A DNA stretch of 64,000 bases, taken from the IMG/VR virus record IMGVR_UViG_3300005613_000002, positions 257,625 through 321,624 of that record. One strand, 5' to 3'. Below are positions 2,208 through 63,133 of the stretch, in pieces. Each line of letters starts with the position of its first letter. The first letter of the stretch is position 1. Position numbers and translations under genes: made by a program. The notes under the pieces were generated by a model. It was not told the DNA's origin, ran no database searches, and saw only the letters and a program-made list of their open reading frames with translations.

Positions 2208-3632
2208 TTAGTGATCTATTTTTGTTGTAAGTACTGTAGCATTAATGCTTGGACGAGTAAATGCCACATATTTTATTTGATTTCTTTCTTTAATCACCCA
2301 ATTTTCATTAATATCATTTTCCATAACAAAAACGTGCGAATATGTACTACCCTGACTTTTATGACCAGTAATTGCATAACCATAATCCAAGTCCTTCACA
2401 ATTATATCACCAGAACTTCTATATAACCCATTCTTATGTTTATCTATGGTCACCATTATCATATTGTCACGTCTAAACGCATAATACTTTTTCCAGTTCC
2501 TTTTATTTGATTTACCCATATCACGGAAAAAATCATGCATTTGAGCATATAAATGTAAATTTTCATAATCATTACAATCAACAATAAAAACATCTTGGAA
2601 TTTAAATTGACCTTTAGATAAATTTTCCCTTATTTTTACACGATAACCTAAAATCCCATATTCATTTTCTTCTCTTTTTGACTTATCAGTAATTAGATAA
2701 TCACCAGAATTTTCAATAATGTTTACAGTTTGTCTTTCATTACTAATTGAGCGATAACCCATTAACATATCACCTACTTCAACAATATCAATATCACCAC
2801 TAAATAATTCACTACGAATTACCTTATTAGCATCTTTAACTGTATCGTTTTTCCATGCAATAACTTTTGCAAAGTCAGTATCTTTCTTAAATTCACTTGA
2901 TGAATATTTATCAAGAATTTCAGTCCTAAATTCTTTTTTCTTAACGGTGAAAAGTATACCCTCACCTAAATCGTTCATATTGGTACGTCTATCAAAACCA
3001 CCATCAATCCTATTAAGATTATTCCTAAGTGCATCATATATGAATGCTAGTGGATTTGTATCATTTTGTCTTTCGATTTTAGTTAATTGATGATACAAAT
3101 TTGTCATATTATTAAACACAGCACTTTCCTTTTCACCAACAGGTGGAATTTGAGCAGGGTCACCCATAAAGATAACTTTAGTTCTAATGTCTTTAACCTT
3201 ATCCAGAATCATTTCATATAATTCTAAATTAATCATCGATGCTTCATCAATTATCACAAAATTATAATCACCAATTCTTGGAATTGCTATTGGATTAAAT
3301 TTGGGGTCATTTGGATTGAAATTATCTAAATCAACATCAGGTCTTAAACCTAGTAAACTATGTAATGTTCTACCTTCTTTACCTGTAGTGTTCATCACTA
3401 CCTTTTTTGCTTTATGAGTTGGTGCTGATACTACAACACCATAACGATAATTATCAAGAATCTTTTTTATAATGGTCGATTTACCTGTACCAGCATATCC
3501 AGCTAGGGTAAATAGTGTCTCACCATTTTTTAACCAATTTCTGATTTTATTAACACCATCGAATTGTTCTTTGTTAAACGTAATAAGTTTACCATTAGGT
3601 AGTATTAATTGATTATCTTGAATTTTATTCAT
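2208..3632 (-). CDS. dda: Dda/RecD-like SF1B DNA helicase
   Basis: Walker A GYAGTGKST, SAPTHKA, IIDEASM, GDPAQIPPV, LTKIERQ, YAITGHKSQGSTY, YVAFTRP. Confidence 0.92.
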   Translation of the reverse strand: MNKIQDNQLILPNGKLITFNKEQFDGVNKIRNWLKNGETLFTLAGYAGTGKSTIIKKILDNYRYGVVVSAPTHKAKKVVMNTTGKEGRTLHSLLGLRPDVDLDNFNPNDPKFNPIAIPRIGDYNFVIIDEASMINLELYEMILDKVKDIRTKVIFMGDPAQIPPVGEKESAVFNNMTNLYHQLTKIERQNDTNPLAFIYDALRNNLNRIDGGFDRRTNMNDLGEGILFTVKKKEFRTEILDKYSSSEFKKDTDFAKVIAWKNDTVKDANKVIRSELFSGDIDIVEVGDMLMGYRSISNERQTVNIIENSGDYLITDKSKREENEYGILGYRVKIRENLSKGQFKFQDVFIVDCNDYENLHLYAQMHDFFRDMGKSNKRNWKKYYAFRRDNMIMVTIDKHKNGLYRSSGDIIVKDLDYGYAITGHKSQGSTYSHVFVMENDINENWVIKERNQIKYVAFTRPSINATVLTTKIDH

Positions 3633-23827: not shown

Positions 23828-24259
23828 TTACGCAATTTCTAATATATTTTTTTTCGTATTAATTGTTTTATCAAAAATTAAATATATTTCAACCAATATT
23901 GATATAATATTCTTATTTTTCTGATTATCAACATTAAATATATTTCTCCAGAATTTTTCATGGAATTCTAGTGATGTCCCATATTTATTATTATATGATT
24001 TATAATATTGATGATAGTAATATTTATGATAATATTCTTTAAGTTCTTTATTATTTTTAAAATCAATACCTTCCTTTAAAAATTCATCACATACTTTATT
24101 ATAACAAAAACTGAAATGATTATATATATCGTCATCAGTATTAATAGATTCATAATCAAGATAATAATGATCTATATAATAAAGTAAATTAATTGAAAAA
24201 TCTTTAAATGTTTCAACTCTACCCATTAATAATACATATTGTTGAGTATTACTATTCAT
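23828..24259 (-). CDS. hypothetical protein
   Basis: 143 aa, coupled to amidase stop. Confidence 0.65.
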   Translation of the reverse strand: MNSNTQQYVLLMGRVETFKDFSINLLYYIDHYYLDYESINTDDDIYNHFSFCYNKVCDEFLKEGIDFKNNKELKEYYHKYYYHQYYKSYNNKYGTSLEFHEKFWRNIFNVDNQKNKNIISILVEIYLIFDKTINTKKNILEIA

Positions 24260-25011
24260 TAGGTTAATGATTTTAACATTTCAACTAATTCTTTTTGTGG
24301 GTGTATGTCACTTTTATCTTTTCTAAATGATGTATGTGACCACACACCAGCTTTTCCAGATAATGCATCTTGTGATAATCTAAACATATCATGATTATAT
24401 TTTAATGGTATTTTATATTTTTCACCCCAAAATACTAATAATTGACGAACTGATTCAATTTGAGCATCAGTATATTTTTCATATCCATAAAAACCTCTAA
24501 ATTTATTTGGGTATTCTACAACATTTTTAATTGGTTTTACTTTTGTGTTGGCTACCATCTTCCTTAAACTAGTATCCCACTTTGCTGGATACCATTTACC
24601 TTTTAACTCAACTAAACCACCCCAAGCATCAATTTCAATACCAATACTACCTTCATTTAATGCTTTACTATTTGATGTTTTAGTTCCTAAATGATATGCC
24701 CAATATTTACTTGAAAAGCATTGGTATATTTTACCATCCCAACCAATAATAATTGCTGTTCCAACTCTTGCTTTTGTTTTTCTCCACCACGAAATATCAC
24801 CATTAACACCTAGTCCACTAACTGTATGATGTAATACAATTTGTTTTTTATTTGTTTGTCGTCTAATATATTGATTTATTGGAAAATCGACAACTTTAAT
24901 TTCTTTAAGATTTAATTTCTTTAAGATTACTCTCTCTTTTGTTTTTATATTATCAGCATATTTAACACTATCATTAAACAAACCCATTGAACATTTATTA
25001 GTACTAATCAT
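24259..25011 (-). CDS. N-acetylmuramoyl-L-alanine amidase (Amidase_2), probable endolysin
   Basis: IVLHHT, SIGIEID, YTDAQ, WSHTSFRKDKSDIHP (Zn ligands H/H/D and catalytic E present); late motif upstream; start may be MGLF at 24987. Confidence 0.85.
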   Translation of the reverse strand: MISTNKCSMGLFNDSVKYADNIKTKERVILKKLNLKEIKVVDFPINQYIRRQTNKKQIVLHHTVSGLGVNGDISWWRKTKARVGTAIIIGWDGKIYQCFSSKYWAYHLGTKTSNSKALNEGSIGIEIDAWGGLVELKGKWYPAKWDTSLRKMVANTKVKPIKNVVEYPNKFRGFYGYEKYTDAQIESVRQLLVFWGEKYKIPLKYNHDMFRLSQDALSGKAGVWSHTSFRKDKSDIHPQKELVEMLKSLT

Positions 25012-25025
25012 AACTCATTTTTTTT

Positions 25026-25034
25026 ATAAATACT
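25026..25034 (-). promoter_or_regulatory. late promoter motif AGTATTTAT
   Basis: Recurrent motif upstream of late genes. Confidence 0.65.
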
Positions 25035-25043
25035 TAGTATACA

Positions 25044-25076
25044 AAAAATGGAATGTTATAATAACATTCCATTTTT
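25044..25076. terminator. intrinsic terminator
   Basis: 15-bp stem AAAAATGGAATGTTA/TAACATTCCATTTTT, 3-nt loop. Confidence 0.8.
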
Positions 25077-25093
25077 AATATGTCTTTAATGAT

Positions 25094-25456
25094 TTATGAT
25101 GCGTATAAAATAACTAAATTATCATATTCATCTTTATCAATATCTAATTCTCCACAAATCTTTTTTATTCTTAGATAATTTAATATTATTATACTTAACA
25201 CATATGATGATAACCCAAACAATGTTACATTATATATAATACATGGAATTACCAATATTGAATTAATTATATTAATTAAACTACCCAACATTAATATAGC
25301 AAGAATTGCGTAAATGATATTATTCTTTATTTTCTCACTATCCGATAATATTGTTTTTGATAAACATTTAAAACCAAATTTAACCCACTTTGATTGTGGA
25401 TATTTATTACTTGCATCAATAAATTGAATTTTTGTAATTCCAGTAATTTCACTCAT
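25094..25456 (-). CDS. membrane protein
   Basis: Two hydrophobic segments. Confidence 0.65.
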   Translation of the reverse strand: MSEITGITKIQFIDASNKYPQSKWVKFGFKCLSKTILSDSEKIKNNIIYAILAILMLGSLINIINSILVIPCIIYNVTLFGLSSYVLSIIILNYLRIKKICGELDIDKDEYDNLVILYAS

Positions 25457-25458
25457 AA

Positions 25459-28400
25459 TTAAAACCCTCTATTTTTTTTAATGTTATTAGTATCCACAAA
25501 ATTATCTGGTTTATAACCAAGTAAATGTTTCATTTTATTAACTTCTTCATTAATAATTGGTTTTGATGTTTCTTCATTTTCATTTAAACTTACAGTTGGA
25601 TTCTTTGTTGCAAAAATAGCTTTTCCATCTGTGTAGAATTTATGTGAACCAATTGCTGCTGAAACTGTTTCATTTACTTTAACTTTATTGTTTTCAGTTT
25701 TTCTATTATATGTATTACCTAAACCAGTAAAATCTAACTCAAACAAATCATCAGTTTTATCAATGTCAACCATTTTTACCTCATTCAATGTAAATTCAAT
25801 AAGTTTTCTTTTATTTAGAATATTATGGAATCTACCAGTAATCATTGATTCACCTAATCCTTCTCTTTCATTCCATTTTGATTCTTCTTTATTAAACTGT
25901 ACTTTTTTATCACCAGTTTCCATTGGTTGTGTATCTTTATTATACATAGGTGCTTTACCCCTAAATTTTAATTTTTCTTGTCTTTGTTTATATAGTTCGT
26001 CACCCATATCAGCTTTCATTCGTTCTTCAAAACGTTCATCTGGTTTATTATCATAAACCAAATCACCTTGACCTAAACGATACATATCAACTTCATCTTG
26101 TTCATCAGTAGTTAAATTACGTTTTGGAACTTCATCACCCTTTTCATTAGTTGAATTACCAACATTCTTTAAAGCAGTCTCTTTATTAATCTTAACAGCT
26201 TTTTTCTCAATGTCTTGACCTAATTTTTGTGGGTCTTCACCAACATCTGTTTGTTGATCTTTCCACATCAATTCTTTTTCAGTATCAATAATTTCTTTAG
26301 TACCACTATGTTTCAAATCACCTTTAAAATTGGTTTTATTTTCAGCACCTAAACGATCTTTCAATACTAAAGCTGAAGGTTTTCTATCTTCTGACATTTT
26401 TTCTAATTTTGCTTGATGAATTGAATATGCATTCAATTCGTTATTTAGTTCTTCTAACATATTTATATTTTCATTCATATCATTTAAACCAGTTTCAACA
26501 TTACCAGCACTTACTGTTCCAACTGGTGCTGCTGAATTAGACATACTTGTTGGATTATCATCAATCATTGATGATTCGGTTTCATTTATATTCATAGCTT
26601 CTCTCCATTTTTCATAATTATATACAATATCTTGTCCAAATCTATAAACACCAATATCAGTTTTTCCATCTGGATATTTAGCATTCACAAATTGCCATTT
26701 ATTACCACCTAATTCAAAAGGGTCTTCACCATTTCTATCAGATACATATTCAACAGCATCATGCACACTTAATTCATTTAAGACTTTACCTTCTGATGAA
26801 TTTTCATTCAATTCTTTTCCGTTTTCAAAACTAATGATTGTAGTATCTTCATCATACCAATCTGAAACATTAAAATTATTATCGGAAACTTGATTAACAT
26901 GTTGAGCCACACCTTCTTCCTTACTAATGCGTTGTGCTTCAAATTTTGCTTGTTCTAAACTACTTTCATTAACCTTTTCTGGTTTTCCTTTATGTTTTGT
27001 TGATGCAAAATCTTTAACATCACTTTGTGACATAGAATCAGCAGCATTAGAAACGCTATCACCAACTTCATCTGGACTTAAATCACCTTTTTGAACAGCA
27101 TGAACCATACCCATAAAACGTTGTTGTGATTTTGATTTAGCTTTTTCATTTAAATCATTAGGTAATTTACCATGTTGAACAAATAGTTCATATGCAATAC
27201 TTTCAGGAACTACATAATTGTCAAATCTTTTTTTAATTAACGATTCCTGTGAAGATAAAAGATTTGTTACTTCCTCATTACTCATTTTATAAGTGTCTTC
27301 CAATATATTCCAAATATTCGCAACAAAATCATCAAATTTAGAAAAATGATTATTTAAATTTGGATTAATTGTTCCTTCTTCAACATGCTGTCCATTAATT
27401 GTTCCTGCTTGTATGTCGTTTTTTATGATTTTCTGATTTGTTGGATTCATATTATCAACATTTCCATAGGCATCACTATTATTCAACACAAAATCAGCAT
27501 CGGTTTGTTCATTTAATTCATCAACGTATTTTTCAAATCCAGTTGATTCAGTTAAATAATCAGTTTCTTGAATTATTTTACCACCATCCCATATAGGTTT
27601 ACTCATTACTGGTGCTTTTTTTCCTTTCATTATATCACCATCTCCCCAAGCAGCAGGACCAACATACGCACCACTTGATGCTGATGTTGTTGTTTCATCA
27701 ACTTGTTTATTATAACCTAATGCAGGTGCAAATGCTCCAGCACCACCACCTCCAGCACTAGTTGTTTCATTGGTATTATTTAACACCTCTAAGTTATATC
27801 CTAGACCTTCAAGTTCGTTTTTTAAATTTTGATATTCTTCAGGTAATGCATTTCTACATTCAGCAGCATAATTTGGGTCAATAGCAGAATGTTGTCCAAT
27901 ATGTGCATATCCAGTTTTATATTTACCACTAATATCATGATTTTCTTCTGGAAAATAAGCAAACACATCATCATCATTTGGATGAATTAAAAACATTACT
28001 TTAGTTATTTGCTCACTATTTTCATCGACATTTGATTTTGGTTGATTTGCCATTTTTTTAATTCCAGTTTTTTTCAATTGATTTATACCGCTTTTATCCC
28101 TTCTTTTCTTTTCTTTCGGTATTGCCATTTTATATTTTTGTAGATACTTTGGACTATTTAAAACATAATCATTAAATATCATATTTTGAATAGTCTCATT
28201 ATAATGGTAACCATATTTTTCTTCACCATTTTCAGCCATTTCTTCATAAACAGATGATAATTTTGGGTCAGAGAATACTAATGACTCCATTTTAGCTAAA
28301 CTAAAAATTTTCTTTTTTAATGATTGTTCTTTTTCATTTAACATACCAGCTTCATTTAAATTAAGACCATTAATATTCATAGTTTTATTAAAGTCTTTAT

Positions 28401-28467
28401 CAAACTTTTTAGCTTGGTCGCTAACTGGTTTTCTAAACGTTGGTTTCATTGTTGTATCTTCGTTCAT
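25459..28467 (-). CDS. large acidic multi-module protein, putative internal head/core protein
   Basis: 1002 aa; about 13 [LIVM]-N-E sites delimiting small modules, including a DUF3008-like KAKSKSQQRFMG...FAST module; downstream of a late promoter. Confidence 0.55.
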   Translation of the reverse strand: MNEDTTMKPTFRKPVSDQAKKFDKDFNKTMNINGLNLNEAGMLNEKEQSLKKKIFSLAKMESLVFSDPKLSSVYEEMAENGEEKYGYHYNETIQNMIFNDYVLNSPKYLQKYKMAIPKEKKRRDKSGINQLKKTGIKKMANQPKSNVDENSEQITKVMFLIHPNDDDVFAYFPEENHDISGKYKTGYAHIGQHSAIDPNYAAECRNALPEEYQNLKNELEGLGYNLEVLNNTNETTSAGGGGAGAFAPALGYNKQVDETTTSASSGAYVGPAAWGDGDIMKGKKAPVMSKPIWDGGKIIQETDYLTESTGFEKYVDELNEQTDADFVLNNSDAYGNVDNMNPTNQKIIKNDIQAGTINGQHVEEGTINPNLNNHFSKFDDFVANIWNILEDTYKMSNEEVTNLLSSQESLIKKRFDNYVVPESIAYELFVQHGKLPNDLNEKAKSKSQQRFMGMVHAVQKGDLSPDEVGDSVSNAADSMSQSDVKDFASTKHKGKPEKVNESSLEQAKFEAQRISKEEGVAQHVNQVSDNNFNVSDWYDEDTTIISFENGKELNENSSEGKVLNELSVHDAVEYVSDRNGEDPFELGGNKWQFVNAKYPDGKTDIGVYRFGQDIVYNYEKWREAMNINETESSMIDDNPTSMSNSAAPVGTVSAGNVETGLNDMNENINMLEELNNELNAYSIHQAKLEKMSEDRKPSALVLKDRLGAENKTNFKGDLKHSGTKEIIDTEKELMWKDQQTDVGEDPQKLGQDIEKKAVKINKETALKNVGNSTNEKGDEVPKRNLTTDEQDEVDMYRLGQGDLVYDNKPDERFEERMKADMGDELYKQRQEKLKFRGKAPMYNKDTQPMETGDKKVQFNKEESKWNEREGLGESMITGRFHNILNKRKLIEFTLNEVKMVDIDKTDDLFELDFTGLGNTYNRKTENNKVKVNETVSAAIGSHKFYTDGKAIFATKNPTVSLNENEETSKPIINEEVNKMKHLLGYKPDNFVDTNNIKKNRGF

Positions 28468-28468
28468 T

Positions 28469-28675
28469 TTATTTAATATCAGCTTTCCAGAATTCTTTCT
28501 TCATCCACAATAATTTATATACAGAATCTAAAGCATTTTTCATTGTACTAATTAGCTCACCTCTTGACTGGCTATTAGAATTATGTAAAATTTTCTTCAT
28601 TTCTTTATCCAAGGAATCGTTAACTAATTTTTTTATTTCACTATTAACAATTGCTTTAACTTCGTTTTTATCCAT
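28469..28675 (-). CDS. small hypothetical late protein
   Basis: Start moved to MDKNEVK (28675) because the late motif at 28697-28705 lies inside the longer ORF. Confidence 0.6.
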   Translation of the reverse strand: MDKNEVKAIVNSEIKKLVNDSLDKEMKKILHNSNSQSRGELISTMKNALDSVYKLLWMKKEFWKADIK

Positions 28676-28696
28676 GTTAAGTACATTCTGTTGGTA

Positions 28697-28705
28697 ATAA
28701 ATACT
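28697..28705 (-). promoter_or_regulatory. late promoter motif AGTATTTAT
   Basis: TACTAAGTATTTAT context shared with the 25026 copy. Confidence 0.65.
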
Positions 28706-28758
28706 TAGTACACTCAAAAAAATAAAAAACTATCATTATAATTTAACAACTGTTTTAT

Positions 28759-29586
28759 TTATTGTGTTAAAATGATATAACTTCCAATACCTAATGCACC
28801 ACCAACACCAATGTAGACCAATTTTTGACTATTTCTATCAAAAAAACTTGTAAATTTTTGCCAACCAGTTGGATTCACTAATTCCTTCTTTAAATTAGGG
28901 ATTGCATAACTATCAATATTGGTTGTCTTATAAAAACCATTTGAATTAGAAACACTAAAAGAGATTGGATAACCTTTTTTCTTCTCATTATTCCAATGAA
29001 AATCAACGAATTGTTCATTTGGAAAATAAAGAGAATCAACAAATAAAGTTGGTTTGACTAATGGATTTACAGGTAATACATTCCCTATTGTTAAACTATA
29101 ATTCACATTATAATTAATATCATTAATGGTGTTTTCATATTTATCTGAAAAGACAATTAATTTAGATGTGGTATCAACAACTGTTTCACCAACATGTGAT
29201 AATGAATCAACAACTATTTTTGTTTGAAGTAATGCTGCTGCTATTACTTCTTTTTCTTTTTTTATTTTCTCCTTTTCTTTTTCAACATTAAGAACTCTTG
29301 CCATCAATTCTTTTTGTGATTTAGTAAGTTGTACCTTATCTTTTTCCAACTCACTAATTGATGTCTGTATAGTTAGTTTCTCCGAGACCCATTCATTTTT
29401 TTCGTTTTTATAGCTTGAAACACTATCGACTAATGCGTTTTTTAAATTTTCCTCACTAACTAATTTATCCTCTAATTTATTGATTTTATTTTTTTGCAAC
29501 CCAAATCCACCACCTAATACGATGAAAACAACTACACCTATTAATATAATTGTCCCTAGATTAATATTTAATTTTATGTTTCCCAT
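28759..29586 (-). CDS. membrane-anchored coiled-coil protein (possible spanin-like lysis protein)
   Basis: N-terminal TM, long coiled coil, C-terminal hydrophobic tail; late motif at 29602. Confidence 0.5.
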   Translation of the reverse strand: MGNIKLNINLGTIILIGVVVFIVLGGGFGLQKNKINKLEDKLVSEENLKNALVDSVSSYKNEKNEWVSEKLTIQTSISELEKDKVQLTKSQKELMARVLNVEKEKEKIKKEKEVIAAALLQTKIVVDSLSHVGETVVDTTSKLIVFSDKYENTINDINYNVNYSLTIGNVLPVNPLVKPTLFVDSLYFPNEQFVDFHWNNEKKKGYPISFSVSNSNGFYKTTNIDSYAIPNLKKELVNPTGWQKFTSFFDRNSQKLVYIGVGGALGIGSYIILTQ

Positions 29587-29601
29587 TTTTTGTATTTTTT
29601 T

Positions 29602-29610
29602 ATAAATACT
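29602..29610 (-). promoter_or_regulatory. late promoter motif AGTATTTAT
   Basis: 15 nt upstream of ATG 29586. Confidence 0.65.
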
Positions 29611-29651
29611 TATAAAAAAGGAAACGGTTACAATTGATATTCAATTGATTA

Positions 29652-30140
29652 TTATTGTTGAACCATATTATTTCTCCAGAACTTATAGAAAATATCGTAA
29701 TATTCTTCAAGTTTTTTTATAATTAAATCATTTTCTGGATTATCAGGTGAAAAATCTTCAGAATAATCAAAAACTACATTACTAGTATCTTCATTTGGTG
29801 TAACAGTATATACAAATTTAATAATTCCATCAACAGTCCCACCCCAAAATACTAAATTATCGTAAACTTCTAATTCAACGAATTTTAAATTCACATTCAT
29901 TTCCTTAAAAAAGTTTAACATTTTTTGTTCTTCTTCTGTTTGGTCAAACACCGTTTTTTTATTTTCACCAGTGTCTTCATTTAAATTACGTGTGATTTTC
30001 ATCATATCACGCATATTTAAATCATTTTTTGGTGTATCAGGTGTATTAAATTCAGTAGTATCGTATGTACCTTCACGCATTCTTTTAAGAAAAACCCTCA
30101 TTTGGTTTGGTGCGTTTTTTTTATTTAAATTGTTGTTCAT
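29652..30140 (-). CDS. hypothetical late protein
   Basis: 162 aa; LNE site after an N-terminal segment; ACTATTTAT at 30155-30163. Confidence 0.65.
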   Translation of the reverse strand: MNNNLNKKNAPNQMRVFLKRMREGTYDTTEFNTPDTPKNDLNMRDMMKITRNLNEDTGENKKTVFDQTEEEQKMLNFFKEMNVNLKFVELEVYDNLVFWGGTVDGIIKFVYTVTPNEDTSNVVFDYSEDFSPDNPENDLIIKKLEEYYDIFYKFWRNNMVQQ

Positions 30141-30180
30141 GTTTTAGTTTAATTATAAATAGTATTATTCACTAGAATCA

Positions 30181-30801
30181 TTAATCTAGCATTTCATGTC
30201 GGTCTTCAACTAATTTTTCAAGTAAATCTTTAAGCCATACCCAACAATTCTTTTCATCAGCATCTGTTATTTCTGCTAGTTTTTTATCTTCCTTAGTCAT
30301 ATCATTATCTTGATATGCAAACCAGTCATAATCTTTTCCAGTGTAATCATCATTTTTTTTGATGATTTTATTACCAACTTCTGCTGGTGGAATAATAACA
30401 AAATCATCATTTAATTTTGATTTTGGTTTTTTATCTAAGTCCCAAATAAATTCAGGATTATCTCTAAATCTTTTATTACCATAAAAATAATCATGAGTAA
30501 ATTCTAATCTAAAATACATTACAGGATATTCCCAATCACCTCCAGCTTTCATTAACTCAGCATTAAATTCATATTTGATTGGTTGATCTTTTCTTAGATT
30601 TTCTTTGACATAAAAAGTTTTCTTTTGACCAGAACTATCGTTATTTTCTAAATCAAAATTAATTCTTTGAAATTTTTGTGCTTCAAACACTTTGTCACGC
30701 CAAACATCATTAATTATGGTATTATAATTAAATATTTCCACATCTTTATCTTTTTTTATTGCAGAAATTTCTTCATTAATAATTTCTATTATTCTAGTCA
30801 T
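30181..30801 (-). CDS. hypothetical late protein with N-terminal IINEE motif
   Basis: MTRIIEIINEEISAIKK; AGTATTTAT at 30806-30814. Confidence 0.7.
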   Translation of the reverse strand: MTRIIEIINEEISAIKKDKDVEIFNYNTIINDVWRDKVFEAQKFQRINFDLENNDSSGQKKTFYVKENLRKDQPIKYEFNAELMKAGGDWEYPVMYFRLEFTHDYFYGNKRFRDNPEFIWDLDKKPKSKLNDDFVIIPPAEVGNKIIKKNDDYTGKDYDWFAYQDNDMTKEDKKLAEITDADEKNCWVWLKDLLEKLVEDRHEMLD

Positions 30802-30839
30802 GTTAATAAATACTAAATAATTTCATAATTAACTAACAA

Positions 30840-31035: not shown

Positions 31036-31638
31036 TTATAAATTTAACATTTCATTAAATTCTGTTATACTAATATTTGGGTTAACATCGCCTGATTCCT
31101 CAAAATAATTACTTCTAAAAACAATACCTTTAAATTTTATTGTGTCCTTATGATAATTTCTAAACTCAATTAAATTTTCAGCAATCCCAAATTCTTTACA
31201 AAGTTTTTTACATAATTCAATTGTACTAGCTATTTGTTCATCAGTATATTTCTCCCAATAATTATAACCCATCCATTTTCGTTTAAGAACATTAGCTTCA
31301 TCACAACTTTCGTTAATCCAATTAGTATATTTCCCATTCGAACTTTCAATTAGATATCCCATGTTTTCCAAAACAATTGATATGGATTGTTTATCTGATT
31401 GTTTGATACTTATAAAATCAGTATAATTTTTTGGGTCATAATGCTGGTAAACCAAACCATTTCTTGTTATAGTAAACGTATTCCATTGTTTAGATTTACC
31501 AAAATCTTTATGTTTTAATCTTACTAAATGATTACTATCTTTTCTCAAACTAGACGCTAATATGATTTGTGTTTTATTATGTTTAGTTTTATAATAATTC
31601 TTTGATTCAATTTGATGTGTTTTAGTATCTATCTTCAT
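31036..31638 (-). CDS. Amidase_2-fold protein lacking Zn ligands (pseudo-amidase)
   Basis: Collinear with the 24259 amidase (QIIL, ITRNGLVYQ, SISIVLE, YTDEQI, DVNP) but HH to AS, E to V, H to R. Confidence 0.7.
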   Translation of the reverse strand: MKIDTKTHQIESKNYYKTKHNKTQIILASSLRKDSNHLVRLKHKDFGKSKQWNTFTITRNGLVYQHYDPKNYTDFISIKQSDKQSISIVLENMGYLIESSNGKYTNWINESCDEANVLKRKWMGYNYWEKYTDEQIASTIELCKKLCKEFGIAENLIEFRNYHKDTIKFKGIVFRSNYFEESGDVNPNISITEFNEMLNL

Positions 31639-32298: not shown

Positions 32299-32314
32299 AA
32301 CAATAAATACTTAA

Positions 32315-35300
32315 TTACTCAATAGCAACAGATGAAATTCCATCATCACTCAATTGTACATCTAAAATATAATCAGGTTCAATATTAACTCTATGTTCAA
32401 TAATTAAAACCTTTTTCATGTTTGATTTAATCAACTGTAGAATTTCAATAAATTCTTCAATACTATCTTCACTTAATTTACCCATTACTTCATCTAATAA
32501 GAATATTGATGGTTTTGACTTAACATTAATCTGATTTAATGCAAACTTTAATACAACACTTGAAAATGTTCTTTCTTTACCTGATGCACTAATACAATCA
32601 ATAATTGCTGTTGGTCTATCGTGATATGCTAATTTAGGTCTTAAATCATCAACATCAAGCCAAATTTTAAATGGTGCAACACTTAATATGTTTTCAAGAG
32701 TAACATTTATTTTTGGTAGAATATAATTACTTAACATTTGTCTTGGAATACCATCTCTATGAACACATTTCTTATAAAGGTTCATTACGTTATCACGATA
32801 TTCTTGTAATTTAAACTCAGCCAATAATAACTCATTATTTTTTATTTTAAGTTGTTTTTCACCTATATTAGTCTTTAAAATAAAAATATTTTCTCTTTCA
32901 TCAGCTTCATTTCCTTCAAGTATTTCTAATTTCTTTTTAGCTGCCTCAATACCCTTATTAATGTTATTATTTTCTTCAATTTGTTTTAAACTATTATCAT
33001 AGTTATCAATTTTTTGTTGTAATATGTCAATTTTTAATTCCTCATTCTGTATTTTAGTTGGGATTAAATTTGATTCATCAACATATGTTTTTCTTTTCTC
33101 TACATCATTTTTATCATTATTTAATTCACCAATTTCTTTTAAAACTTCTACCATTCCTAGTGAATCCTTTTCAATATTCTCATTAATAATATCAATTTCA
33201 GTATTTTTATTATTAATATCTTCAACTAATTTTATTTTCTCAATATTATTGATATTTTTTATAGAGTCTGCAACACCAAACATGTTAGTTTCAATTTCAC
33301 TAATTTCTTCATTTATACCAGAAATTTCTTCATCAATATGAGTTTGATGTTCTTTTGTTAATTCTTGTCCACATGTTGGACAAGTTTTACTAGTTTTTAA
33401 ATCATTTATTTTAGTCTTTAATTTAACTATAGAGTCTTTATAATCAGAACCACTCTTTTTGAGAGTAAAAACTTTCCCATTTAAAATCTCAATATTATGT
33501 TCAATATCACGAATTTCTTGTTCAATTGATTTTATTTTAAGTTTTAATTCGTGTTCATTTGTCTTGTGAGTATCTTTTTTCTTTGTTAAATCGATTAATC
33601 TTTGTTCATCATACGTTTCCTTCAAATTCTCAATACTCACTGTTAAAACGCCTCTACGTGCTTCTAGTTTAAGTATTTCATCATTATGTGATTTAATTGT
33701 TTCTTTAGTTTCTTTAATATCTAAATTATATATTTCTGGGTCTATTGTATATAATTTTTTTGTTAAATCTTCAACATATTTTCGACCAATTGTAATTTTT
33801 TTCTGAACACCAACTAAAGTAACTGTTTCAATTTCATCCATTTCAGTTTTGGTGATACCAATTTCTTCTTTAAGTGTTTTGTTTTGTTCAGTAACCAATT
33901 CAACATTACAAGTTACTCTTGTTTTTTCACTAATTCTTTTTTGATATTTTTTAAATACATCAAGTTTAACATCAAAAATATCTAAGCCACTATCAAATAA
34001 TAATGAATCAATAAATTCAGCCATATCATTAGACAAAATTTTATTCAATGTATCTGATGTGGTCATAACAATACGCATGAAGTTATTATATGTACCAATA
34101 ATCCTATTAAGTTTTTCTTGTGTTTTAGCTCGTTTATCACCATCTAATGTTTCAAATGAAGTAGTATCATCCATCACTTCATCAGGACTAGACAATAAAT
34201 AATAACTTAAAGTTGTTGGTGCACCATTAATTTCACCATCTTTAGAATATTTAATTATTGTTTTCTTTTTAATACCATAATACTCACCATTGGCTTCAAT
34301 TACTAAATATCCTTCACAAGATTTAGCACCATTTCTATTATTAACAAAACGTTTATCACCAAATTTAGTTCTACTCTCAGTTTCAATAGTTTTTCCGAAT
34401 AATAAATATGATATTAATTTAATTATTGTTGTTTTTCCTGCTGTATTTATTCCAGTAATTTGAAATAAACCATCCATATCAATCCAATTAATATCAACAT
34501 CACCATAAGACATAAAATTCTTTCCACCAAACTTAACAATATTCCATTCAATATTGCTGCTTTCATCTAATTCGATTTCATTAAAGATTTCTTCATCAAG
34601 AGCAATAACATCCTTAATAACTTCTTCATCAGTACCAATTTTACTCAAATACTCATTAAATATTTCATGTTGTACTGTTTTTTCGGTAATATTTTCTAAT
34701 GTTACACTTTCATTTATATCAACATCCTCAGTTGCAAGGAATTGATTTTTATGGGAAATAACACAATTTGGATATAATTTTTTAATGTAAGTAGATAAAG
34801 ACCTTTCACTATCTTTGTTTCTTGATTGTGGTAAAGTATTCCATACAAATCTTACCTTCATATGTTTACTTGGATTATCAATTTCAAAATCCAAATCATC
34901 AAAATCTATAAATGGAGTAATGTTCACATTTTTAAATGACCAATCATTTTTTATTGAAACTTCTTCAACTGCTTTTGTTTTGATATTCCATAATAAATAT
35001 CCATGAAAATTATCATCACCTTCAGCAAAATCTTGAGCGATTAATGAACCACAATATGCTTTAGTTTTATCAGCGAAATATTGTTTTTTATGAATATCAC
35101 CCAAAAAAGAAAAATCACCAATATAATCAGAAATTTTATAATATGATTTACTTTTCATATCAAACCCAGTTACTGATTTACAACCATTAATTGGGTCATG
35201 AAACAAATCTATTAACGTACAATCATTTTCATTTCTATATGCATTTATTTTTTTTCCTTCTTTTGTTTTCCAAGGATTATTTTTCGTATCACCGTGATGC

Positions 35301-35683
35301 CATACTACCCAAATAATATTATCATCAGTATAAAATCCTGTTTTATCGTAATACACAATATTTGAATTCTTAATCGTATTAACCATTGCTTTAATAGAAT
35401 CAGTCCTTTTGATATTCTTTTTACGCATATCATGATTACCCCTTGTTATCCTAACTGGAGCAATATCAGCTAATTCATTTAACAACATTGAAATTAATTC
35501 AATTTGTTCTGGTTGTAAATCCAGATAATCATTAACTAAATCACCAACAATAACAATCCTATCTGGTTTTTTTTGTTTTAATGATGTTATTAATTTTTTT
35601 AACACTTTGGTATATTCCTCGTTTCGAGTAGGTGTCTTACGAACATGTATATCAGCAAGATGTGCTATTTTTATTATACTCAT
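32315..35683 (-). CDS. SbcD/Mre11 nuclease fused to SbcC/Rad50 ATPase (gp47-gp46 fusion)
   Basis: HLADIH, GDLVND, GNHD, GDIH; Walker A GINTAGKTT, zinc hook CPTCG, SASGKE, LLDE; start moved to MSIIKI (35683). Confidence 0.9.
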   Translation of the reverse strand: MSIIKIAHLADIHVRKTPTRNEEYTKVLKKLITSLKQKKPDRIVIVGDLVNDYLDLQPEQIELISMLLNELADIAPVRITRGNHDMRKKNIKRTDSIKAMVNTIKNSNIVYYDKTGFYTDDNIIWVVWHHGDTKNNPWKTKEGKKINAYRNENDCTLIDLFHDPINGCKSVTGFDMKSKSYYKISDYIGDFSFLGDIHKKQYFADKTKAYCGSLIAQDFAEGDDNFHGYLLWNIKTKAVEEVSIKNDWSFKNVNITPFIDFDDLDFEIDNPSKHMKVRFVWNTLPQSRNKDSERSLSTYIKKLYPNCVISHKNQFLATEDVDINESVTLENITEKTVQHEIFNEYLSKIGTDEEVIKDVIALDEEIFNEIELDESSNIEWNIVKFGGKNFMSYGDVDINWIDMDGLFQITGINTAGKTTIIKLISYLLFGKTIETESRTKFGDKRFVNNRNGAKSCEGYLVIEANGEYYGIKKKTIIKYSKDGEINGAPTTLSYYLLSSPDEVMDDTTSFETLDGDKRAKTQEKLNRIIGTYNNFMRIVMTTSDTLNKILSNDMAEFIDSLLFDSGLDIFDVKLDVFKKYQKRISEKTRVTCNVELVTEQNKTLKEEIGITKTEMDEIETVTLVGVQKKITIGRKYVEDLTKKLYTIDPEIYNLDIKETKETIKSHNDEILKLEARRGVLTVSIENLKETYDEQRLIDLTKKKDTHKTNEHELKLKIKSIEQEIRDIEHNIEILNGKVFTLKKSGSDYKDSIVKLKTKINDLKTSKTCPTCGQELTKEHQTHIDEEISGINEEISEIETNMFGVADSIKNINNIEKIKLVEDINNKNTEIDIINENIEKDSLGMVEVLKEIGELNNDKNDVEKRKTYVDESNLIPTKIQNEELKIDILQQKIDNYDNSLKQIEENNNINKGIEAAKKKLEILEGNEADERENIFILKTNIGEKQLKIKNNELLLAEFKLQEYRDNVMNLYKKCVHRDGIPRQMLSNYILPKINVTLENILSVAPFKIWLDVDDLRPKLAYHDRPTAIIDCISASGKERTFSSVVLKFALNQINVKSKPSIFLLDEVMGKLSEDSIEEFIEILQLIKSNMKKVLIIEHRVNIEPDYILDVQLSDDGISSVAIE

Positions 35684-35697
35684 ATATGATTTTTTTA

Positions 35698-35728
35698 CAA
35701 ATATATTAAATTTGAAACAATATATCAA
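35698..35728 (-). promoter_or_regulatory. Bacteroidota primary-sigma promoter (TTG-N20-TATATTTG)
   Basis: Consensus match 14 nt upstream of ATG 35683. Confidence 0.65.
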
Positions 35729-42310: not shown

Positions 42311-42350
42311 TGTTTAATATTTTCTATAAATACTATCAAAATAATATTTT

Positions 42351-51189: not shown

Positions 51190-54100
51190 TTATATTTCTA
51201 ATGTTGTTGTAGGTTCTAATGTTGTCGTAGGCTCAACAGTGGTTGTTGGCTCTACTGTTGTTGTTACCGCATCAACAATTATACAATTATATAAATCCCA
51301 TTCAATTTGCGCTTCTGTTGGAAGTGTTGTTGTAGGTTCTACTGTTGTAGTAGTTCCAGTAATTGGTTCTAATGTCGTTGTTGTCGTAGGTTCAACTGTT
51401 GTAGTTGGAACAGGACAATCCATTTTAAAATACCAACCAACACCAGTTAAATATAATTCAACCATTGCTATAGTTGTTGATGTTGATTTATAAAATTCAT
51501 TAATACCAGAACTATCTGTAATTACCACAGGATAACCATCTGGTTCTAATTCTGGGTCACCAATATTCGGATAAATGAATGTTGATGTTGGGTCTAATTT
51601 ACCTGTTAATGCATTAGTAAATATATTTCTTGCTGATTCACCATAACCATACGCTGCATCACCAACAAAACCACTATCAATTTCGGTATTATTATCATAT
51701 TTCACAATAAATCTATCAGGATAACCACTCACATCATAATTAAAGACAATATTTCCAGTATCTGAACCTAAATCAATTTCATAAATATTTTTATATCCAA
51801 CTTCACCACCATCATATTCTACTAAATCACCACATAATGCATCATATATTGGTTGAACTGTAGTTGTTGGTTCAACCGTTGTGGTAGGTTCTAATGTAGT
51901 ACTAGTAATAGCACTAACAACAATACAACTATAATCAATCCATTCATAAGTCACAGTATCACCAATTGTGGTTGTAGTTGGCTCTAATGTTGTTGGCTCA
52001 ATTGTAGTTGTAGGTTCAACTGTTGTAGTTGGCTCACAAGGAATTAAATCTGCTTTAACACAGGTAAATGGTTCGTCACATGTATTTAACGAATATCCAC
52101 TTGGACAAACATATCCATGATATCCAAAATCATCAGAATTCTCATAATGTATAGGTGTTGTTGGGTTAGTAACTAATTGGTCTGATGTAAATAATATTTT
52201 TTCACCCAAATCTTCATCACTAGTTGCATTTTCTAAATCATAAGGTGTTGCATCATATATCTGAATACCAACTGCTGCAACACTATATTCGTTATGACCA
52301 TAAATTTCGATCACATTCTTACCAGCAGGTAGATGCATTGGATAAATAAACCAATATCTATAAGGTATTCTATCAGGGAAACCACCACCAGTTGGGTCAC
52401 CATTTGCCGTAAACATAGCAGTTAATGATGGAATATCTTGCTCAAGAACCATCTCACCATTAAGTTTTATTTTTCCCCAATTATCACAACCAAAACCTAC
52501 ATAATATGTTTTGGCAACAGCAATATCAATACAATATGAAAAACCAATATCTTGTTTATTTCGTGTTACATTACCCCAAATAGATGTACGATTTAAAGGT
52601 CCTTGGTCACTATATGGGTTTACCCAATATGGATTACTTAAATCAAATCTACTATAATTTCCAGTACCATCATAATTCCAACTATCAAATAATACAGCAC
52701 CATAAACACCATATGATGTATCATCAGTTTTTTTAACAACATAATATGATGAAGCATAATATGTTGGGTCAATTACATCATAAAGAACACATTCATCATC
52801 ACCAACTGGGTCATATCCTTCTTCACATGTTTTACACCATGATATAATCTCAAGAGCATTACAACTTGGGTCATTTAATTCTGTGAAAGACATCAAATAA
52901 TCATCATTAAATGGTACATTAAGAAATGAATAAACACCAGTACTATATGCTATGTTAGAATAATAACTAGTACCAGTTTCACCAGATAGTTGAACAACCA
53001 TTGGGAATGTACCACTAGTTATTTCATAAAATATATTAACACTATTTCCACTAAACTCATATGGTAATATTGAATAATTTATATTACATACTGGTTCAAT
53101 AGTCGTTGTTGTATCAACAACAATACAACTATAATCAATCCATTCATAGGTTACACTATCACCAACCGTTGTAGTAGGTGCTACCGTAGTTGTAGGTTCA
53201 ACTGTTGTAGTTGGCTCAATTGTAGTTGTTGGCTCTAATGTAGTACTAGTAATAGCACTAACAACAATACAACTATAATCAATCCATTCATAGGTTACAC
53301 TATCACCAACTGTAGTCGTTGGCTCAACTGTTGTAGTTGGCTCTAATGTAGTACTAGGTTCAACCGTTGTAGTTGGTTCTACTGTAGTCGTTGGCTCAAC
53401 TGTTGTAGTTGGCTCTAATGTAGTACTAGGTTCAACCGTTGTAGTTGGTTCAATCGTAGTACTAGGTTCAACCGTTGTAGTTGGTTCTACTGTAGTCGTT
53501 GGCTCTAATGTCGTTGGTTCAATCGTAGTACTAGGTTCAACCGTTGTCGTTGGTTCTACCGTAGTACTAGGTTCAACCGTTGTAGTAGTAGGTTCTACCG
53601 TAGTACTAGGTTCAACCGTTGTAGTAGTAGGTTCTACCGTAGTACTAGGTTCTAATGTCGTAGTAGTAGGTTCTACCGTAGTAGTAGGTTCTAATGTCGT
53701 AGTAGTAGGTTCTACCGTAGTAGTAGGTTCTAATGTCGTTGTTGTACTAGTAGTTGTTGGCTCTAGTGTAGTTGTTGTACTAGTAGTTGTTGGCTCTAGT
53801 GTAGTTGTTGTGGTTGTATCTCCCGGACATGGAGGACAGCATGGACATGGAATTAAACTACCAAACATAGTCATTTCATAATCAGGAATAGTCCAAGACC
53901 TATTTGACTTATATGACATAGCAAACAATAATTCTTGGTCTTCGATAATAAACATTTTTAGTGTATTAAACACTTTTCCAACAATGTTACCATCTAAATC
54001 AGCTAAATCATAATATCTAACATCTAATGATTTTACTGTGCCTGTTAATATTTTACTACTTCCTGTTGGTATTAAAGTAATACCTAATGTTCTAGTGCTT

Positions 54101-55128
54101 GATTTATGCCACATAATTGTTGGCATTTCAAGTTTAGGTGTTTTTAAATAAAATTCCTCACCATAAACATTTTTATCCGAATCATTACTATAATGAATTA
54201 CACCTAATTTTTTATAAACAGGTGCTTGATTTTGAATATATGAAACAAAACCACCATATGTTCTAGTTTCAAAATTACCATATTTTATATCAGTAGCTTG
54301 AACACCTGCAACTTCTTCTGTATATATCACAGATAAATCCCAAAATGGAAATATTGTATTATTGGTATTATAATTAGCAAAATAACTAATAATACTATCA
54401 GCACTATAATCACCAGTAAAACTATAATTTGATGATACACCGCTATAATATATTAGTGCACCAGCAATTGCAGTTGGTGTGTATAATGAAAAATCTGGCA
54501 ATTCTCTATCAACATTAACAACAATATTATCATTCAATAAATTACCAGTTTTACTAATAATTTTATATGTTAAATATGGTGTAGGTAAATCCCTATTAAT
54601 TGTATGTCCAGTAGTATTAGTATCATGAGCATATTTAATAAACAACAAATCCCCAACTAAAGGTTCTTCAGTATTTGAACCATATGTTGGTGCTTTTCTT
54701 AAAGATATTGAATTCCCACCTGTAACACCACTCATATACACCATTAAATCAGGCTGTCTAGTGTGTAATTCATCAGTAATAAATGTTGTTCCACTATCAC
54801 TAAAAAAACCTAAAGAATGTGCATCATTAACTATATCATATGGTTCAGATATTGGTTTAATTTCATTATATTCATCACCTTCATATGTTTTTGGAATAAA
54901 TGAAATTATTTTAGGGTTTTTATCTCTAGGTCTTAAAATACTAATGTCTGAAGAATTGAAATCTGGTTCAACACTAGTATTAATTTCATTAATAAAGTTA
55001 TAATCAATCTCACTATCGCCAACAGCAAAGTATTTAAACGTTAAATCACCCTTAGATAGTTGTTCTCTACCTTTGGATGTCAACATTATATTTAATACTA
55101 CAGGGTCTGTCTTTTCAATGAGTGCCAT
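51190..55128 (-). CDS. large baseplate/fibre-associated protein with long mucin-like Thr-rich region
   Basis: N-term LNIMLTSKGREQLSKG...YFAVGDSEIDY (collar-like); about 170 aa TT[VLI]EP tract; PA14-like and PDRFIV modules; AGTATTTAT at 55143-55151. Confidence 0.7.
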   Translation of the reverse strand: MALIEKTDPVVLNIMLTSKGREQLSKGDLTFKYFAVGDSEIDYNFINEINTSVEPDFNSSDISILRPRDKNPKIISFIPKTYEGDEYNEIKPISEPYDIVNDAHSLGFFSDSGTTFITDELHTRQPDLMVYMSGVTGGNSISLRKAPTYGSNTEEPLVGDLLFIKYAHDTNTTGHTINRDLPTPYLTYKIISKTGNLLNDNIVVNVDRELPDFSLYTPTAIAGALIYYSGVSSNYSFTGDYSADSIISYFANYNTNNTIFPFWDLSVIYTEEVAGVQATDIKYGNFETRTYGGFVSYIQNQAPVYKKLGVIHYSNDSDKNVYGEEFYLKTPKLEMPTIMWHKSSTRTLGITLIPTGSSKILTGTVKSLDVRYYDLADLDGNIVGKVFNTLKMFIIEDQELLFAMSYKSNRSWTIPDYEMTMFGSLIPCPCCPPCPGDTTTTTTLEPTTTSTTTTLEPTTTSTTTTLEPTTTVEPTTTTLEPTTTVEPTTTTLEPSTTVEPTTTTVEPSTTVEPTTTTVEPSTTVEPTTTVEPSTTIEPTTLEPTTTVEPTTTVEPSTTIEPTTTVEPSTTLEPTTTVEPTTTVEPTTTVEPSTTLEPTTTVEPTTTVGDSVTYEWIDYSCIVVSAITSTTLEPTTTIEPTTTVEPTTTVAPTTTVGDSVTYEWIDYSCIVVDTTTTIEPVCNINYSILPYEFSGNSVNIFYEITSGTFPMVVQLSGETGTSYYSNIAYSTGVYSFLNVPFNDDYLMSFTELNDPSCNALEIISWCKTCEEGYDPVGDDECVLYDVIDPTYYASSYYVVKKTDDTSYGVYGAVLFDSWNYDGTGNYSRFDLSNPYWVNPYSDQGPLNRTSIWGNVTRNKQDIGFSYCIDIAVAKTYYVGFGCDNWGKIKLNGEMVLEQDIPSLTAMFTANGDPTGGGFPDRIPYRYWFIYPMHLPAGKNVIEIYGHNEYSVAAVGIQIYDATPYDLENATSDEDLGEKILFTSDQLVTNPTTPIHYENSDDFGYHGYVCPSGYSLNTCDEPFTCVKADLIPCEPTTTVEPTTTIEPTTLEPTTTTIGDTVTYEWIDYSCIVVSAITSTTLEPTTTVEPTTTVQPIYDALCGDLVEYDGGEVGYKNIYEIDLGSDTGNIVFNYDVSGYPDRFIVKYDNNTEIDSGFVGDAAYGYGESARNIFTNALTGKLDPTSTFIYPNIGDPELEPDGYPVVITDSSGINEFYKSTSTTIAMVELYLTGVGWYFKMDCPVPTTTVEPTTTTTLEPITGTTTTVEPTTTLPTEAQIEWDLYNCIIVDAVTTTVEPTTTVEPTTTLEPTTTLEI
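53310..53817 (-). repeat. longest coding Thr-rich tandem tract
   Basis: Continuous (T/S)TT[VLI]EP units, 15-21 bp period. Confidence 0.92.
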
Positions 55129-55175
55129 TATTATTTTTTTATATAAATACTTATTTTCATAAAGTTTTATATCAG

Positions 55176-63098: not shown

Positions 63099-63133
63099 TG
63101 TTTATTTTTTTATATAAATACTTAATTAATTAT

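Follow-up and report, generated by a model that had tools for sequence, protein, structure and literature searches.

A candidate protease-processed internal head polyprotein in an uncultured T4-like jumbo phage

The window analysed here is the last 64 kb (positions 257,625-321,624) of the 321,624-bp IMG/VR record IMGVR_UViG_3300005613_000002. On its minus strand it carries a gene for a protein of 1002 amino acids (aa) in which the tripeptide [LIVM]NE recurs, and this protein is considered here as a candidate substrate of the phage's prohead protease. The source is an uncultured T4-like jumbo phage of ~322 kb, with direct terminal repeats and ~26% G+C. Open reading frames (ORFs, n = 464) were called across the whole genome by a simple longest-ATG script. 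Positions refer to the window unless they are marked as genome positions.

The locus and the recurring tripeptide

The gene belongs to a minus-strand run. The run begins with a fused SbcD-SbcC nuclease, a dCMP deaminase, a 200-aa Amidase_2 and ORFs of 206 and 162 aa, and continues with ORFs of 275, 68, 1002 and 120 aa and a 250-aa Amidase_2. The gene order of the locus is kept in five relatives (contigs of 80-366 kb), and the ORFs of 68, 1002 and 120 aa directly abut one another. A megablast search of the locus against phage records returned zero close relatives. The closest capsid protein among phage records is 33.5% identical and comes from an unannotated 484-kb metagenomic phage. The three central genes are listed below.

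25459-28467, minus strand: 1002-aa polyprotein-like ORF, with conserved ends (residues ~1-330 and ~625-1002) and a hypervariable middle
28469-28675, minus strand: 68-aa ORF, with its stop 1 base before the polyprotein ATG; 68 aa long in all 5 relatives examined
25094-25456, minus strand: 120-aa ORF, abutting the polyprotein stop and kept downstream in all relatives examined

An earlier model-made prediction on this DNA (hereafter the original prediction) had counted about 13 [LIVM]NE tripeptides in the 1002-aa protein by hand and had mentioned VDE and LTE variants. The variants are present, and the exact count is 14, i.e., the N-terminal MNE and 13 internal sites, with Glu at residues 39, 45, 320, 441, 501, 555, 565, 629, 666, 896, 933, 963 and 974. 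Only 1.9 are expected from composition. None of 5000 shuffles of the protein reached 14 (Poisson p ~2e-8), which excludes the composition in Asn and Glu, named in that prediction as a possible cause of the motif frequency. In an unbiased tripeptide scan, LNE ranks first in over-representation (8 observed versus 0.6 expected). Following the usual numbering, the Glu before the presumed cut is called P1, and the two residues preceding it P2 and P3. The excess is specific to Asn at P2, as [LIVM][^N]E occurs 18 times versus 17 expected. Of the 464 genome ORFs, this one is the strongest [LIVM]NE outlier, by ~5 orders of magnitude.

The low G+C content of the genome and a mild over-representation of [LIVM]NE across the proteome (1.5-1.6 times expectation) could suggest an accident of Asn/Glu-rich, AT-biased composition. 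Internal duplication and a signal at the DNA level are further trivial causes. Together, these explanations have a negligible probability. Apart from the shuffles, a self-BLAST of the protein gave the self-match only, with no internal repeats. The hexamer AATGAA is frame-specific, with 16 copies in the coding frame and 0 and 4 in the other two, and the P3 codons are varied. Moreover, the sites are conserved by column in 121 homologues, in which substitutions at P2 spare P3 and P1.

The protein belongs to a large family. A word-indexed search found at least 468 related clusters at 90% identity, and an exhaustive search at least 151 clusters at 50% identity (E < 1e-30, 600-1746 aa), all metagenomic. 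The alignment used for the site analysis comprises 121 proteins of ~1000 aa in 3809 columns. All 121 members are enriched, with 1115 [LIVM]NE observed versus 171 expected. The P2 preference of the family is 6.5-fold for Asn, 2.4-fold for Ser and 1.9-fold for Gln, while the rest of this phage's proteome reaches only 1.5-fold for Asn. Sites occupy fixed alignment columns at reference residues 39, 320, 441, 666, 896, 933, 963 and 974. In these columns, P1 is Glu in 118-121 of the 121 proteins and P3 is hydrophobic; P2 is mostly Asn and drifts between Asn, Thr, Ser, Gln and Lys. In linkers predicted to be disordered, columns P3 and P1 rank among the most conserved (37, 43/45, 299/301, 629, 664/666, 961). 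Such conservation within disordered linkers is the signature of a short linear motif and not of a fold. The individual sites are listed below, except VNE501 and INE629, which end the two modules given in the next section.

28351-28359, minus strand: site LNE39, ending the 39-residue N-terminal leader; [LIVM]NE in 92/121, P1 Glu in 118/121
28333-28341, minus strand: site LNE45; L43 and E45 invariant in 121 homologues
27508-27516, minus strand: site LNE320, at the junction of the conserved N-terminal part and the variable middle; [LIVM]NE in 103/117
27145-27153, minus strand: site LNE441, directly before the DUF3008 module
26803-26811, minus strand: site LNE555, in a low-confidence linker
26773-26781, minus strand: site LNE565, directly before the small beta module
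26470-26478, minus strand: site MNE666, in a Gly/Ser/Thr-rich linker; hydrophobic P3 and P1 Glu in 120/121, P2 being N, S, Q or K
25780-25788, minus strand: site LNE896, within a predicted beta-rich module; [LIVM]NE in ~91/121
25669-25677, minus strand: site VNE933; [LIVM]NE in 118/121, Glu in 121/121
25579-25587, minus strand: site LNE963, in a linker; L or I in 121/121, Glu in 120/121
25546-25554, minus strand: site INE974; [LIVM]NE in 113/121, Glu in 121/121

The gene of the prohead protease, which the original prediction had proposed to locate, was found outside the window, 180 kb from the polyprotein gene. It is a Peptidase_S77 (T4 gp21) homologue at genome 103107-103811, with a PF03420 match at genome 103215-103682 (65.1 bits versus a cut-off of 27, E 9e-19). 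His90 (DHP) and Ser157 (SSRG) of this protein align with His85 (NHP) and Ser140 (SSRG) of T4 gp21, which we take to be the catalytic residues of the T4 enzyme. In the head cluster, a 142-aa ORF comes first and is followed by the protease gene; next are a 512-aa ORF at the scaffold position and a capsid gene of gp23 type (PF07068, E 6e-65). This arrangement mirrors the order 68-21-22-23 of T4. In the capsid protein, the sequence INE followed by Ser, at residue 60, aligns opposite the maturation cut of T4 gp23, between LTE65 and Ala. This junction is [LIVM]NE in 69 of 72 relatives, the comparison comprising 72 distinct sequences from 80 related IMG/VR loci. Furthermore, the protease has a conserved site at its N-terminus, and sites cluster in the C-terminal part of the scaffold-position protein. 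The head proteins of the clade share both the tripeptide and the unusual Asn preference with the 1002-aa protein, and this is the strongest argument that the latter is read by the prohead protease.

The proteases of T4, phiKZ-like phages and SPN3US all cleave after Glu (PMC5694885, PMC9026906). The original prediction had drawn on phiKZ gp175 as a comparison. It proved inapplicable because the protease is of T4 type and the phiKZ-type motif [SAG]xE is not enriched in the 1002-aa protein (15 observed versus 17.6 expected).

Modules between the sites

An AlphaFold model of the 1002-aa protein was obtained from a 60-sequence alignment, in which ~60 positions are invariant. The mean predicted local distance difference test score (pLDDT) is 61 and the predicted template modelling score (pTM) 0.23. 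The model has no global fold and resembles beads on a string, with low-confidence linkers between the units. Confident units in the first half are residues 55-140 (helical), 153-231 (alpha/beta) and 442-490 (DUF3008). In the second half, they are residues 565-627 (beta), 667-841 (long helices) and 874-959 (beta-rich). The original prediction had placed the sites at the boundaries of compact modules. This agrees with the model for most of them, as residues with pLDDT < 50 make up 34% of the protein and hold 9 of the 14 sites (p = 0.02). At the module borders, [LIVM]xE lies within an 11-residue window in 85-100% of homologues, versus 23-24% at random positions.

26965-27144, minus strand: DUF3008 module, residues 442-501, ending with VNE501; in 167/227 family members, nearly all with [LIVM]xE on both sides
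26581-26772, minus strand: beta module, residues 566-629, pLDDT 83-88, ending with INE629 (E629 invariant); in 84/227 family members

The presence of central modules varies among the 227 family members, the module of residues 321-441 being found in 64 of them. Expansion of the centre gives family members lengths of ~600 to 1746 aa. In the variable region, Pfam recognises only DUF3008, DUF6926 and one weak GemA match below the cut-off. In some members, a DUF6926 stretch directly follows DUF3008, and the weak GemA-like match lies in a member of 1746 aa. The scan of family members revealed neither enzymatic nor toxin-like domains.

The DUF3008-like module named in the original prediction is real. 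PF11450 matches residues 443-499 with 37.5 bits versus a cut-off of 24, over profile positions 1-57 of 57, and four PHROG families match the same stretch. The domain is bracketed exactly by LNE441 and VNE501. In a tblastn search against 50,697 phage records, the DUF3008 stretch was the only part of the protein to be matched, and the cyanophage copies are 54-66% identical to it. DUF3008 also occurs in cyanophages as standalone ORFs of 69-156 aa. For instance, the standalone 69-aa protein (ORF93) of the T4-like cyanophage S-SCSM1 is annotated as 'virion protein'. The paper on S-SCSM1 reports 45 virion proteins by mass spectrometry; this figure is for the whole phage, and ORF93 is known here from its annotation alone. 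In S-IOM18 (382-1371), Sf-FS3 (415-993) and S-PM2 (2938-3213), L/V-x-E immediately precedes DUF3008, and in S-IOM18 and Sf-FS3, V-E-E follows it. The S-IOM18 copy forms part of a long basic protein (at least 330 aa). The conserved C-terminal G-L-P-E of DUF3008 itself fits the gp21 motif. No paper on DUF3008 was found in the literature.

The per-module homology searches suggested in the original prediction were successful for DUF3008, with its standalone copies. For the beta module, no standalone copy turned up in a search of limited sensitivity. Other searches with the 1002-aa protein gave little. Pfam, PHROGs and NCBIfam returned DUF3008-type matches only, and NCBIfam had zero matches for the 1002-aa ORF or its neighbours. 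A Foldseek search of the whole model against the PDB had a best E of 0.95, with weak Tudor-like matches to a small beta-barrel stretch, and a PDB profile search gave a single match (E 0.1). An Atlas feature search returned nothing usable for residues 566-629 and weak leads scoring 0.81-0.82 for residues 150-232.

Proposed processing and alternative explanations

Chopping by the head protease is the most likely explanation of the sites because the protein holds about a dozen copies of the capsid protein's predicted trimming motif. From the sites and their conservation, it is quite probable that the 1002-aa protein is cut by this phage's gp21-type prohead protease, whatever the fate of the fragments. 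We give a probability of roughly 55% to the fuller reading that it is a polyprotein-like prohead-core or internal head protein, processed by this protease, of which some modules are retained in the head. Prohead-protease sites in a modular precursor had been proposed in the original prediction, and this part of its packaged-polyprotein reading passed all computational tests applied, whereas the phiKZ comparison and the late-promoter wording did not stand. Overall, its interpretation is partly supported; co-ejection of the products and an effector role for the modules are hypothetical.

The following course of events is proposed. Transcription of the unit of the 68-aa, polyprotein and 120-aa genes would start at the phage promoter that is also found upstream of head genes (see the last section). 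The 1002-aa protein would enter the assembling prohead core through its conserved ends. There, the gp21-type protease, active only inside the prohead, would cut after Glu at ~10-13 [LIVM]-N/x-E sites. The N-terminal products would be the 39-residue leader and a 275-aa piece, perhaps cut further at the conserved IQE301. The centre would yield pieces of 121, 60 (DUF3008), 54, 10, 64 and 37 aa, among them a variable set of small modules of 4-14 kDa, and the C-terminal part a 230-aa helical piece and four small pieces. At least some modules would stay in the DNA-filled head, and others may leave it.

Several points weigh against this reading. The enrichment of sites in linkers is modest, with a p of 0.02 only, and 4-5 of the 14 sites lie inside predicted folds or outside low-confidence linkers (320, 896, 933 and 974, with 565 at an edge). 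According to the model, these may be inaccessible and structural instead of cleaved. A family-wide 'site' near residue 162 falls in a beta-strand and is missing from this 1002-aa protein. The homologues are phylogenetically related, and the cross-family counts overstate independence. The family is known from metagenomic sequence alone and has no cultured relative. The beta module lacks a standalone copy in the search mentioned above, and the protein has no sequence or fold similarity to the T4 internal proteins (IPs), Alt, gp22, gp67, gp68 or any solved structure. A copy of the promoter-like motif also lies at 32303-32310, upstream of an ORF run with dCMP deaminase, and the motif may not be a late promoter. 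Finally, 180 kb separate the polyprotein gene from the head-gene cluster, and it is surrounded by genes for DNA metabolism and amidases. T4 ipII and ipIII likewise adjoin the lysozyme gene, apart from the head cluster.

The same cleavage could also act on an expendable accessory protein in the scaffolding core of a very large capsid, whose fragments exit to give room to the DNA, none being delivered to the host. In T4, the core proteins, including gp22, are cut to many fragments that mostly leave the head, and surplus sites in the propeptides of giant phages are believed to favour clearance (PMC9026906, PMC5694885). The long helices predicted in the C-terminal part (667-760, 784-841) are scaffold-like, most predicted fragments are acidic (pI 4.1-5.4), and the scanned family members are devoid of enzymatic or toxin-like domains. 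Nevertheless, we consider this explanation rather unlikely. The small folded modules are strongly conserved, as seen in the ~60 invariant positions, and the cassette-like gain and loss of central modules is unexpected of a simple filler. DUF3008 recurs in distant T4-like phages, where a standalone copy bears the annotation of a virion protein. Moreover, the genome already has a scaffold-position gene between its protease and capsid genes.

Still less probable is a non-head protein whose short linear motif is read by another protease, such as a host enzyme or the following gene product, or by a binding partner.

59843-61105, minus strand: 420-aa 'protease' of a PHROG 'protease' family, with 27% identity to a putative serine protease of Aeropyrum coil-shaped virus

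The presence of this second, trypsin-like protease gene in the window would fit such a scheme, as would the location of the polyprotein gene, which lies away from the head cluster and has two Amidase_2 genes and a gene for a membrane-anchored coiled-coil protein as neighbours. The enzyme was rejected as the processing protease; it resembles an archaeal-virus serine protease and is unrelated to the prohead protease. A different reader is improbable because the site is identical to the capsid junction. Indeed, the same tripeptide with the same P2 preference occurs at the capsid propeptide junction, homologous to the T4 gp23 cut site, and the tripeptide recurs at the protease's own N-terminus and in the scaffold-position protein. 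The conserved pattern of hydrophobic P3 and P1 Glu is the known gp21 logo, and [LIV]xE also flanks DUF3008 in cyanophages whose only common feature with this phage is the T4-type head machinery.

Processing by the prohead protease, the preferred reading, can be compared with known systems. The core and internal proteins of T4 (gp22, gp67, gp68, IPI-III, Alt) are alike in depending on a Peptidase_S77 protease, in the gene order around this protease, in cleavage after Glu with a hydrophobic P3 and in a capsid propeptide junction at the homologous position. T4 also has short leaders ending in the motif, and internal-protein genes apart from the head cluster, beside a cell-wall hydrolase gene. Mature T4 head components shed propeptides of 7-65 residues, and the 10-residue leaders of the internal proteins are capsid-targeting sequences (PMC5694885, PMC9026906). 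In contrast to the present protein, the T4 IPs and Alt shed terminal propeptides only, and gp22 is a single coiled-coil scaffold. Here, many small folds, unrelated to one another, are strung along a chain of ~1000 aa, with sites fencing each fold and a variable, cassette-like centre. In addition, P2 is strongly Asn here, whereas T4 accepts many residues at this position.

The inner-body and ejection proteins of phiKZ, 201phi2-1 and SPN3US are likewise head-internal and are cut after Glu, by gp175/gp245, often at several sites. They differ in their S/A/G-x-E or A-x-E motif, show no homology to the 1002-aa protein and are typically cut to two or three pieces, while about a dozen are predicted here. 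The phiKZ-like proteases are diverged relatives of gp21, whereas the protease of this phage matches the T4 family model directly. As for DUF3008, cyanophages have it as a standalone protein of 69-156 aa or as part of unrelated longer proteins, and here it is one bead of the 1002-aa chain. In concept, the engineered 'expression-packaging-processing' system based on the T4 capsid targeting sequence (CTS) is similar: a targeting part carries cargo into the prohead, and gp21 frees the cargo. The CTS system is man-made, with one cargo per fusion. The present protein would be a natural, multi-cargo counterpart.

No paper describing a head polyprotein of such an architecture was found in the literature. 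What appears to be new, as judged from sequence, is a long chain of unrelated folds with about a dozen conserved sites and a cassette-like centre, in an uncultured T4-like clade with genomes of 320-365 kb. The conserved ends and the hypervariable cassette centre tentatively suggest a natural multi-cargo delivery chassis, the cargo of which would be freed in the head and injected with the DNA. Under this possible but doubtful extension, the site-fenced DUF3008, DUF6926 and beta module would be cargo, and one packaging event would load a set of small proteins in a fixed ratio. If true, phages would have here a new means of varying the proteins that they inject.

Of all cargo that large phages carry, the internal head proteins are the least understood, and they are difficult to predict from sequence. 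Those of T4 include an anti-restriction protein and an enzyme modifying RNA polymerase of the host. The present approach offers a sequence-only route to internal proteins in uncultured phages: the specificity of the protease is read at the capsid junction, and the proteome is scanned for proteins overloaded with the motif. DUF3008 thereby receives a first testable role, as a peptide that the protease sets free inside the capsid of T4-like phages. Because the family is large, with at least 468 clusters, a result for a single member would annotate many genomes.

Promoter-like motif, neighbouring genes and other features

The original prediction had attributed late-promoter motifs to the neighbours of the 1002-aa ORF. 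An upstream motif is indeed present, though as [GC]TATTTAT on the coding strand (often AAGTATTTATA), which is the reverse complement of the T4 late-promoter word TATAAATA. The T4 word was dropped in favour of this motif, as TATAAATA itself is not enriched (19 observed versus 24.6 expected). The genome holds 120 copies of [GC]TATTTAT, of which 65 are correctly oriented and precede a start codon by 8-80 nt, most often by 22-28 nt; the overall count is no higher than base composition predicts. The motif, placed at 22-29 nt, precedes the scaffold-position gene, the protease and other head-cluster genes; it also precedes many large ORFs and 5 genes of the polyprotein cluster, and it was not found upstream of the ligase, helicase or SbcCD genes. 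One copy likely marks the start of the transcription unit made up of the 68-aa, polyprotein and 120-aa genes, and a hairpin is likely its terminator, both on sequence grounds.

28697-28704, minus strand: promoter-like motif GTATTTAT, 29 nt upstream of the 68-aa ORF
25044-25076: hairpin of 15 pairs with a T-run on the coding strand, putative terminator of the unit
29602-29609, minus strand: promoter-like motif upstream of the 275-aa ORF
30155-30162, minus strand: promoter-like motif upstream of the 162-aa ORF
30806-30813, minus strand: promoter-like motif upstream of the 206-aa ORF
25026-25033, 42326-42333, 55143-55150 and 63114-63121, minus strand: further copies of the motif in the window

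Three further genes of the cluster lie upstream of the unit, and two Amidase_2 genes flank the cluster.

29652-30140, minus strand: 162-aa ORF, with KITRNLNE ending at residue 55 (site 29976-29984); KITRx[LI]NE in 6/6 orthologues
30181-30801, minus strand: 206-aa ORF, with a 10-residue leader ending IINE (site 30772-30780)
28759-29586, minus strand: 275-aa ORF, coiled-coil-like in the middle and with hydrophobic segments at either end; syntenic in relatives
24259-25011, minus strand: 250-aa Amidase_2 (N-acetylmuramoyl-L-alanine amidase) gene, flanking the cluster
31036-31638, minus strand: 200-aa Amidase_2 gene, flanking the cluster

The sites assigned to the 162-aa and 206-aa neighbours in the original prediction (RNLNE and IINE) were borne out, and both are conserved in orthologues. 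In the 206-aa ORF, [LIVM]xE stands before the conserved domain in 6/6 orthologues, even where the leader is much longer. Its leader matches the T4 IPII/IPIII targeting sequence (MKTYQEFIAE) in length and form. The 275-aa ORF has zero [LIVM]NE sites. In the 200-aa Amidase_2, a [WF]LNE tetrapeptide at residue 110-111 is kept in 6/6 orthologues, and it is probably structural.

Elsewhere in the genome, three otherwise unrelated proteins have in common an N-terminal leader of 25-28 residues, K[EK]RLF[EQ]xM..[VL][ND]K..[VL]NE. By its sequence, this leader looks like a removable capsid-targeting peptide. The conserved 39-residue leader of the 1002-aa protein, which ends LNE, is similar neither to it nor to the T4 targeting sequences. 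The K[EK]RLF leader was also rejected as the targeting element of the polyprotein by means of a hidden Markov model, which matched only the three source proteins. The 148-aa member of the three has a metalloprotease-like HEFIH (HExxH) motif. Moreover, three proteins of the head-gene region with several [LIVM]NE tripeptides are probably further substrates of the prohead protease, judging from these sites.

Genome 51934-53883, 53885-54331 and 118324-118764, minus strand: K[EK]RLF-leader proteins of 649, 148 and 146 aa, respectively
Genome 115142-117193, minus strand: 683-aa protein of the head-gene region, second among the ORFs in [LIVM]NE enrichment (5 versus 0.9 expected)
Genome 117271-117519: 82-aa ORF adjoining the 683-aa gene, with 2 [LIVM]NE sites
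Genome 109473-110249: 258-aa ORF near the 683-aa gene, with 3 [LIVM]NE sites

Other genes of the window are listed below.

32315-35728, minus strand: SbcD/gp47-like phosphoesterase fused to an SbcC/gp46-like Rad50 zinc-hook ATPase in one ORF of ~1120-1137 aa
45065-51155, minus strand: three large ORFs with Fib_succ_major domains (2) or a CHU_C type IX secretion sorting domain (1)
51190-55128 and 61110-63098, minus strand: proteins of 1312 and 662 aa, with a near-identical N-terminal stretch of ~50 residues ending DY[NE]FINE

In two relatives, a LAGLIDADG homing-endonuclease gene lies directly downstream of the SbcD-SbcC fusion. The Fib_succ_major and CHU_C domains point to a host among the Bacteroidota and to host-like surface or receptor-binding proteins. 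Judging from their similar N-termini, the 1312-aa and 662-aa proteins are probably structural paralogues that share a domain for attachment.

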